A stretch of 64,000 nt of DNA, taken from Iphione sp. A-MEVVRFRX5. Lineage: Eukaryota. Every line of letters starts with the position of its first letter. Within the stretch, counting starts at the first letter, position 1. Under the pieces are notes generated by a model, which had not been told where the DNA came from, did no database searches, and was given only the letters and a program-made list of their open reading frames with translations. The DNA lies in the NCBI GenBank assembly GCA_976226885.1, contig OZ320313.1:53382001-53446000 (forward strand). The letters run 5' to 3'. This document shows, piece by piece, positions 35,501 through 38,500 of this stretch. The translations under genes and the position numbers were made by a program.

Positions 35501-38500
35501 TTGTCTGCCATATGTACATCAAAAAGCCCCCGAACTGCTGTAGAATGGCCTGTAAGGACCCTTAGTTCTGCACCATACTTGTATAGCTTAAATGGGTAAA
35601 TCACCATTTCTCACTCCAGCTTATCGGGAAGATAGTATGAGGCACATGCTTGTACCCAAACAAGTGCCATTCAGTGTAAATGATTGTGCAAAATGATACA
35701 CTGACCCATATTGACACAACGTTTATGTTATGGTCAGTAATTTCCACATGCACGTGTTTCCTGTCCGTGTTGTGAGAAGACCAACAAACCTGTCCACATG
35801 GAAACTGGGCCTTGAAACAAATCTCATTCAAGTGTGTGTTATAGACCTCTTCAGTTCAGGGAAATATAGACTACATGTACTTGTGCATCCTGGAAAATGT
35901 TGAATTATTTCATCAGGAATGGATAACGTAGGATGAAGCCAGACTGTCACCAAGCGAGGACCAAAAGTTAACCTACCAAAGACAATTGTTCTACCACAAT
36001 AAGAATTCATGGCAAGATGATGATGGTACAATTTAAGACACGATGCATGAGGTCACTGCAGAGAATTGTGTGTTTTTTTAAGTTCAGTGGATTTCGATTA
36101 CTCTGTTGTTAGTTGAAAATGTGAAAGTGTATCTGATGTCGAGTTCTTACCGTGCCATCTATGTTTTACAGCCACCACGACAAAACGACCACGTGGCTGG
36201 ATCCTCGAGGCAAGTCGCTCAGCACAACAGCAATCAATTCGAATACGATGGCCCTCAGTCCGGGCGGTCCCACCGGACCGTCGTCGGGGCCTCCCGGGCC
36301 TCCCCAGCCGTCACCTCAAGCTCAGTCACCGTCGCCGAACGTGCCCTCTCACACCCTGGGCGCGCTCCCGCCGGGCTGGGAACAGGCAACCACCGCCGCT
36401 GGCGAGGTGTATTTCATCAACCACAACGACCGCACCACAAGCTGGTTCGACCCACGAATACGTAAGTGCATGATATCTCCATATCTGTACCTGAGGGCAC
36501 CTTCGTCGTTCGCACGTACATATACACGTATTCACATGTATATTTGATATGAGTGATAAAAATTATCACACTGTCCAATATGAGATGATGATTGGATGGC
36601 TGTATCCCAAAATTAGAGAGTGAAATCTTTTTCTTTTTGCCACCCCCGACTCACTTGGCGTATAACTACAACAGCTTTTGCCATTAGTGGCTCGTTTTTT
36701 TTTCATGATTTACGTAGCACTTCTTCGACCAAATTTGTACCCACTCTACCTTAATGTCTCAAGAAGCATGGGATTTTGATGTGACTGGAAACGTCATGTA
36801 ATGCATTTTATATACTTGTATGAATGTGGCTTAAAGGTACATTCATCTTACCGTTCTAATCCCCGCTTGCAGCGAAACATCTCCAGAAGCCGGGAATAAA
36901 AGTACAAGATGTATGTATTAAGCAACTAAACCTCCAAAAATCGCCACCACAGCAGCAACAACAACCGTCGCCGTCGGCCCCGCCGCCCACATCAACGCCG
37001 CACCAGTCGCCCGTGCGGCAGCAGCCGACGCCCAGTCCCATCTCCTCACCCCCGGGTGTGGTAGCAACCGGCGGCCCAACCGGAAATTCGGCCGGAACCG
37101 GAAGTGCCGGGGCCGGAACGCCGGCATCGCTTCGGTCGCCAACCAACGAGCATGTGCGCATGGAACTGATCCGGCTGCAGCGGGAACGCGAGGTGCTCAT
37201 GCAGAGACAGCGAGAAATCGCCCAACAGGTATGGAACAAGGTATGAGAACCAAGCGTCTACACAGCCTGCCCCGCCCACCGGCGCGCCGCTCGTCGAGCG
37301 CGACCCTCGCACCCAATATGCACGCAGCTCCCATGGTGTCCAGATTCTTGCCGGAACGGTTTGATAATGAATGGACTAGCTTATTTCTCTCGCGCGCATC
37401 TACATACTAAACAGTATTAATAATGTCTTTTTCGTCATTTTGGTTCGCGCTACTTAGTCATGGGATTAATGAAACGCACCCACGAAGTTATTTTTTAATT
37501 ATCATTTTCTCAACTTAATAACTAAACTATAAAGTAGAGTAGTAGTTACTTAATCCTTTCTCTCTGGTAAGAATGGCAGACACCCTGAGGGTCATCAGAA
37601 GGTCTGGGCAAGTTGTGCAGAAAACCCGTTAGCAGAAGAGGTTTTCTATTTTCAAAAAGAAAAAAATAGTTCACACTGCAGTGTAAATATTTTGTTATGC
37701 ATGCAGTCTTTGAAGTCATTCCGTAGACATGCTTGATAATGACATGCAGCTTCGGCTCCTAATCCAGTGCCTAGTATAGTCACTTACGAATAACCATTGA
37801 CCATTTTTCTTGGTCCTTGGTAAGTTATGTACCATAGGACGCTTGATATTGTAAAATCTCCCAAAATTGTTTACGTAGAACCATCTTAAATGCCCTCTCT
37901 CCTTTCTGTTTTCATTGTTTCAGTTCAATTGGCCGCAAAATCGTCAATCTTTTGGTCAAGTATGGCTCTGCCAGTTAAATATTTTACCCTTTCCCCCCCA
38001 AACATCTTGAGCAGGTGGCGGAAAAAAACTGATGCTCCTGACAGGATAGTGCATACTTCAGCAAATTGTCCTCTTGGTCCTCTGTATGTTAAATGTGGGA
38101 TTCTAAGGACAGTAAACATTGCTAATGCATGAACATACTGTACCAGGTAGAAAAAGATTATCTTCCAAAAGACCGAGAAATAGACCAACTGTTTGTGCAT
38201 GTACCAACTAAATACATGAAAGCCGCAAGCTTGTAATGCCGTTATGTTTAGACATTAAAATATCTCAGATGCACAAACAGTTAGGTCTTTCATAAAAGTA
38301 AATTTGAGACCTTTCAAATCCATATTCCTCCACGTAAAAGACTTGTTCCAAATGAGACACCGTTAGGTTGACAACCATCCTTTGTGGCTTAAATATAATT
38401 TCTCTCTCCCCCCCAATGGAAGTCATAAAGAGCTGTGTTGGTAAATTTAAATGTACGATGAACACTGCACCAGAATTCGACAGGTACTCGCAGTCCTGAC

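Follow-up and report, generated by a model that had tools for sequence, protein, structure and literature searches.

The 64-kb window analyzed here, i.e. the whole stretch of DNA from position 53,382,001 to 53,446,000 of contig OZ320313.1 (Iphione sp. A-MEVVRFRX5), holds a YAP/Yorkie gene of annelid type on its + strand. The third intron of this gene contains a 36-nt block (37924-37959; positions are those of the window unless another contig is named) that is probably a genuine, maintained and optional coding exon, spliced in at the junction that divides the leucine zipper of the protein. The exons of the gene were mapped from the sequence itself and from the closest relative protein, P0151, and are given below with the elements that surround the block; a slash marks an exon border.

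5090-5550, + strand: exon 1, with the start codon, the TEAD-binding region and the first half of the first WW domain (WW1)
36172-36461, + strand: exon 2, with the remainder of WW1 and the second WW domain (WW2)
36873-37228, + strand: exon 3, with a Q/P-rich linker and the coiled coil, ending in REIAQQ; first donor CAG/gtatgg
37229-37240, + strand: 12-nt extension of exon 3 (GTATGGAACAAG, +VWNK), with the second donor AAG/gtatga; counterpart of the vertebrate beta extension
37698-37703, + strand: TGCATG (Rbfox-type), 226 nt upstream of the cassette
37894-37923, + strand: pyrimidine tract and acceptor tttcag of the cassette, 30 nt, 65% identical to L009 (the second worm, described below)
37924-37959, + strand: candidate cassette exon, 36 nt, phase 0-0, stop-free, 12 residues
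37960-37965, + strand: cassette donor gtatgg, a weak site with A at -1 and T at +4; GTATG unchanged in L009
38126-38131, + strand: TGCATG, 167 nt downstream of the cassette
38196-38201, + strand: TGCATG, 237 nt downstream of the cassette
51924-52095, + strand: exon 4, including DPFLGQ...SGLG; the last zipper leucine lies four residues past the junction
near 52460, 61160 and 61770, + strand: later exons; the final exon ends in ...KMESLLTWL and the stop codon at about 61809

The gene is assigned to YAP/Yorkie because it combines a TEAD-binding omega loop with two WW domains and a C-terminal LLTWL. The Pfam family TEADIR3 scores 24.4 bits in exon 1 alone (cut-off 26, E 3e-5), with a similar score for P0151, and the named representatives among the 150 matches listed in a protein search with exon 1 are YAP proteins. 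WW1 is split over exons 1 and 2, WW2 lies in exon 2 and reaches 47 bits against the Pfam WW model, and the last exon carries the PDZ-binding motif -LTWL at the C-terminus. P0151, the nearest relative among the protein collections, derives from the Logan transcript contig L002; it is approximately 73% identical to exon 1 of the window and has the same coiled coil. Exon 3 matches residues 248-351 of this protein, as well as L009 13236-13488.

Intron 3 extends over 14.7 kb (37229-51923), and the block lies 695 nt past the first donor of exon 3. An earlier description of this DNA, made from the letters alone (the sequence-only reading), had placed an open 36-nt block of phase 0-0 about 700 bp into the intron, with a strong acceptor and the donor CAA/gtatgg, and this turned out to be exact to the base: the sequence across the block reads ...ccctctctcctttctgttttcattgtttcag/TTCAATTGGCCGCAAAATCGTCAATCTTTTGGTCAA/gtatgg. 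The phase matches both flanks, as exon 3 ends in ...GCC CAA CAG/gt (37228) and exon 4 starts with cag/GAG AAC ATG (51924). The splice sites were scored with a simple position weight matrix (PWM) and compared with the donors and acceptors of the gene itself; the cassette acceptor scores 7.5, above all real acceptors of the gene (1.1-4.3). Apart from the block, intron 3 holds no open, frame-preserving pseudo-exon with splice sites of such quality. Two further comparable pseudo-exons, with scores at least equal to those of the candidate, occur in the remaining ~113 kb when both strands are counted (56467-56586 on the + strand and 10201-10239 on the - strand), and the number expected by chance per intron of such size is about 0.26 when estimated empirically from the pseudo-exons of the window, or 0.05 under a Markov-1 null. 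By itself, the appearance of the splice sites is weakly suggestive and lies within the reach of chance. The repeat annotation has no entry over the block, and an origin from a repeat or transposon was rejected on this ground.

The block is considered to exceed chance because of its conservation in a second worm, not because of its splice-site appearance. The reading frame of exon 2 led to the open reading frame (ORF) P0266, of 136 residues, on a 709-kb ENA contig, and the 20.4 kb around this ORF (L009) belong to another worm and contain the orthologs of exon 2 (at 10142-10390) and of exon 3 (at 13236-13488). Where these two exons align, 6 of the 18 four-fold degenerate sites are identical between the window and L009 (33%). 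Judged by these sites, neutral positions are saturated between the two species, which are distantly related. A blastn comparison of window 36000-47500 with the whole of L009 returned exon 2, two pieces of exon 3, one intronic island and one stray match of 19 nt, the last being out of order (E 0.005) and taken as chance. The intronic island aligns 37893-37964 with L009 14030-14095 (73.6%, E 1e-4), collinear and in the same orientation, and the remaining intron sequence gives no alignment between the window and L009.

Within this island, the ortholog of the block occupies L009 14055-14090, 566 nt past exon 3. It is likewise 36 nt long, with an open frame, and reads tttttcag/TTC AGT TGG CCA GCT AAC CGC CCG ACT TTT GGT CAA/gtatga, which translates into FSWPANRPTFGQ. 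Between the window and L009, 26 of the 36 nt are identical (72%) without any indel, and the AG and GTATG borders are kept. Identity declines to 65% in the 30-nt pyrimidine tract and to 45-49% in the 270 nt on each side, the latter being near the value of random 36-mers (42 ± 6%), which served as the null. Five of the ten differences fall at third codon positions; the Pro, Asn and Arg codons change only synonymously, and a Ser is replaced by Thr. In frame 1 the peptides share 8 of 12 residues, and frame 3 runs into a stop in L009. The comparison that the sequence-only reading had proposed, namely of the block and its splice sites with the flanking intron and of the substitutions with the frame, passes in this one related genome. 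Two smaller features of the block were noted. An Arg-x-Ser/Thr-Phe motif in the encoded peptide (NRQSF at window 37939-37953, NRPTF at L009 14070-14084) may be a site of phosphorylation. A stem within the exon, UUGGCCG...(17 nt)...UGGUCAA at 37929-37959, ends at the donor, differs in L009 by a single G-U to A-U change, and could mask the weak donor.

The transcript of the relative (P0151/L002) joins REIAQQ directly to ENMLKE, and since this is a skipping (alpha-type) junction, the cassette is regarded as optional rather than constitutive. A hydrophobic heptad V-x6-L-x6-L-x6-I-x6-L, read from the sequence, crosses the junction of exons 3 and 4, with V, L, L and I in exon 3 and the last L in exon 4. 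Inclusion of the cassette would insert 12 residues (F-x-W-P-x-N-R-x-S/T-F-G-Q) between ...REIAQQ and ENMLKE, inside this five-heptad zipper (V-L-L-I / L), so that the last zipper leucine would be displaced out of register and a proline would be added. The heptad register would be lost with an insertion of 4, 12 or 16 residues, and the proline of the cassette forms part of a Trp-Pro pair.

These insertion lengths arise from the combination of the cassette with the tandem donor of exon 3. In the window, the first donor is followed by an in-frame extension, CAG/gtatggaacaag/gtatga, within the context CAACAG/GTATGGAACAAG/GTATGAG. This arrangement is kept nearly base for base in L009 (CAACAG/GTATGGAGCAAG/GTATGAG, +VWSK; window 37229-37247, L009 13489-13507). 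The tandem 12-nt donor is absent in the six others compared, namely Lamellibrachia, Capitella, Paralvinella, Acanthaster, Argiope and a third related contig, L010, which ends ~300 nt past the coiled-coil exon and so says nothing about the cassette. The gene model of Owenia uses a second GT, 6 nt past the first (+VR). Cassette and tandem donor together would give four in-frame products, with no insertion or with 4, 12 or 16 additional residues, according to the same logic as the alpha, beta, gamma and delta forms of vertebrate YAP1, and only the alpha form would have an intact zipper.

The block is flanked by TGCATG hexamers at the three positions named by the sequence-only reading (37698, 38126 and 38196), which had also rightly called the motif common here: its density in the window is 0.84 per kb, but three or more copies occur in only 2.8% of stretches of equal size. 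L009, which has only seven copies in its 20.4 kb, carries TGCATG at -230 and +220 of the block, in flanks that are otherwise unalignable. A (U)GCAUG within ~300 nt of the cassette is conserved in this manner on both sides (-226, +167 and +237 in the window; -230 and +220 in L009). A strong acceptor combined with a weak donor and with conserved flanking motifs suggests a regulated exon of the Rbfox type. Inclusion would then be regulated and probably tissue-restricted. The likeness to Rbfox-regulated cassette exons lies in the presence of (U)GCAUG within ~230 nt on both sides, at positions kept in the two species; the motif is common in this genome.

Several observations weigh against the interpretation as a coding exon. 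The cassette donor, with a PWM score of 5.1, lies below all real donors of the gene (6.2-9.2). The conservation is known from one other species (L009) only, a formal coding test would need more than the ten substitutions available, and the conserved ends of the block are also explicable by splice signals or by the small exon-internal stem. The single transcript of the relative contains neither the cassette nor the 12-nt extension. Finally, the homologous introns of Lamellibrachia, Owenia (2.9 kb), Capitella (0.5 kb) and Paralvinella (0.2 kb), as well as that of Acanthaster, hold no 12-residue counterpart that scores clearly above shuffled sequences.

The alternative that survives best, albeit an unlikely one, is a conserved intronic regulatory element shaped like an exon, i.e. 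a decoy or splicing-regulatory pseudo-exon or a structured RNA, that is not usefully kept in the mRNA. Such an element would bind U2AF/U1 or Rbfox and control the removal of the 14.7-kb intron or the choice of the tandem donor. It would agree with the weak donor, with the transcript of the relative, which has no cassette, with the conservation being best at the two block ends, together with their splice signals, and with the 7-bp stem UUGGCC(G/A)...UGGUCAA that adjoins the donor in both species. However, a decoy needs conservation of neither frame nor peptide, whereas the length of 36 nt is kept exactly, without indel, neither species has a stop in the frame that the flanking exons impose, and the variable middle of the block retains Asn-Arg via two synonymous changes and Ser/Thr via a conservative one.

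A chance pseudo-exon, in which a pyrimidine tract and an AG happen to stand 36 nt before a GT without any function, is considerably less probable. Equally good open pseudo-exons do exist elsewhere in the window, at the two sites given above, and about 0.05-0.3 are expected per such intron, but a neutral block would not retain 72% identity without indels, with AG/GT borders and in collinear position, when the surrounding intron and the four-fold sites are saturated. It would need L009 to come from a very close relative, which is contradicted by the four-fold identity of 33%. An intronic small RNA gene over the block, such as a C/D-box small nucleolar RNA (snoRNA) or similar, is highly improbable and was rejected together with a structured RNA, as the Rfam match that hints at it (sn2524 at 37865-37964, 25 bits, E 0.27) falls far under the gathering threshold of 44, the stretch around the block contains no TGATGA or CTGA (C/D boxes), and the fold (-6.6 kcal/mol, no covariation) is unsupported.

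The preferred interpretation, an optional exon that is translated as part of YAP, invites comparison with the vertebrate gene. The transactivation domain of vertebrate YAP1 contains a leucine zipper that stays intact only in the alpha isoform, as both exon 6 and the extension of exon 5 (VRPQ) disrupt it (PMC5867882, PMC10240341), and isoform choice alters partner binding and transcriptional output (reviewed in PMC5867882). The sequence-only reading had described the vertebrate system as a gamma cassette that combines with the beta donor into four isoforms, in agreement with these papers. The protein alignment places the worm insertions at the same junction, between the coiled-coil exon and E-[LM]-x-L-[RK]. 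Both genes have a 12-nt donor extension that starts with Val (+VRPQ in vertebrates, +VWNK in the worm), and both have a frame-preserving cassette in the next intron, with four in-frame combinations and, as predicted for the worm, an insertion inside the zipper. The vertebrate cassette is 48 nt long and encodes 16 residues (AMRNINPSTANSPKCQ), compared with 36 nt and 12 residues in the worm, and the worm peptide has no resemblance to the exon 6 peptide by eye, a comparison that was left unscored. The proposal that this locus could make the same four-way set stands in so far as the block and the tandem donor are conserved in L009 and the junction is that of vertebrate exons 5/6/7; the isoforms themselves are predictions. 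Inclusion in the mRNA, the set of four isoforms, their regulation and the effect on the zipper and the transactivation domain we infer from the genomic sequence. The worm exon thus appears to act in the manner of the vertebrate switch, whether or not the two exons descend from a common ancestor.

Vertebrates are not alone in having optional insertions at the zipper junction, which are common in invertebrate database models. In the protein alignment, all insertions fall at one junction, ...E-[IL]-x-x-Q / E-[ML]-x-L-[RK]. The sea star Acanthaster planci has a 96-nt cassette (32 residues; ctctag/...AAG/gtgagt at 48274-48369 of its contig L004) that is annotated as alternative, being included in XP_022098030/31 (X1, X2) and skipped in XP_022098032 (X3), and Asterias amurensis also possesses the sea-star cassette. 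This YAP1-A-like cassette resembles that of the worm in consisting of one exon that preserves the frame and lies at the same junction, and differs from it in its length (96 nt against 36 nt), in its position 19 kb into a 25-kb intron and in the absence of a tandem donor. The W-P-Q shared by the sea-star and window cassettes was not accepted as a sign of homology and was treated as chance, since L009 has W-P-A. A second alternative exon was noticed in Acanthaster planci at about 16863 of L004, where a 15-residue insert (DKGRFLLSTPKPDNN) inside WW1 is present in X1/X3 and absent in X2, and would split the WW domain.

Among the chelicerates, the spider Argiope bruennichi has a separate 24-nt microexon (NFGNPPLN) at the junction, 1.1 kb past the coiled-coil exon and with the strong acceptor ttgtttcag/. 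Related peptides of 10 residues occur in ticks, horseshoe crabs and other spiders; TAFLGNPARN is an example from tick and horseshoe-crab proteins. The chelicerate insert shares the junction with the worm cassette but belongs to the peptide family [FL]-G-N-P-x-L-N, and was seen at the genome level for Argiope alone. Short alternative insertions at the junction are found in Lingula (VQ), Ruditapes (VKLEQ) and Tubulanus (IVLALFQE). In Lamellibrachia satsuma, an extra 144-nt exon (EVMLKR...SRPFQ; contig L003 34353-34496) lies 500 nt before the ENMLKE-type exon. Its ends resemble those of an insert in the JGI protein P0220 (ERLLQR...TRPFQ), and it may represent a different annelid cassette at the same junction. 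The sequence-only reading knew of no description of such a switch in an invertebrate. This holds for the literature searched, where no paper describing optional insertions at this junction in invertebrates was found, but not for the databases, which already contain the alternative sea-star cassette in RefSeq and the spider microexon in a gene model.

When the annelid, sea-star and other invertebrate cassette peptides were compared with intron 3 of the window, nothing significant was found, and the cassette looks specific to the clade of this worm and L009. Searches for additional relatives were negative within their respective scopes. A word search with the exon 3 peptide gave no match, probably because the gene caller had, in L009, taken an antisense ORF over this exon in place of the sense ORF. 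Metagenome scans with exon 3 and with the alignment of the window and P0151 found no relative, and a search with full-length P0151 gave no match closer than 47% identity.

It is conceivable, if doubtful, that optional insertion into the zipper of YAP goes back, as a regulatory device, to ancestral bilaterians and was not invented by vertebrates, or that the junction was recruited repeatedly for the same purpose, with the annelid clade preserving the four-isoform switch. The annelid, sea-star, chelicerate and vertebrate cassettes would then descend from one ancient microexon, as the patterns N-F/I-[GW]-N/P...P and N-R-x-S/T might indicate, or would reflect such repeated recruitment, and the conserved R-x-S/T-F site could make the break of the zipper phospho-regulated. 

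With donor extension and cassette both kept at one junction in the worm lineage, zipper breaking by splicing would be under selection outside vertebrates. Taken with the peptides inserted in sea stars, spiders, a brachiopod, a nemertean and bivalves, this would mark the junction as a point at which Hippo output is generally controlled and which can be tested in simpler animals, and a precise target is at hand for annelid models of regeneration and growth.

Other parts of the locus are also conserved. Runs of N at 9319-9485, 31286-31466 and 52886-53025 (167, 181 and 140 nt) fall in introns 1 and 5. Upstream of exon 1, a 130-nt block (4492-4614) is 76% identical to positions 197-323 of L001, the genome contig of the P0151 species, and is probably promoter or 5' untranslated region (UTR). 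In intron 1, a 93-nt block at 10525-10617 is 77% identical to L001 6121-6210; it lies ~5 kb past exon 1 in both species and may be a conserved enhancer or a further small exon. In the 3' UTR, the block at 62212-62448 is 83% identical to positions 2013-2256 of the relative's transcript L002, which exceeds the identity of most coding sequence, and is likely a post-transcriptional control element.

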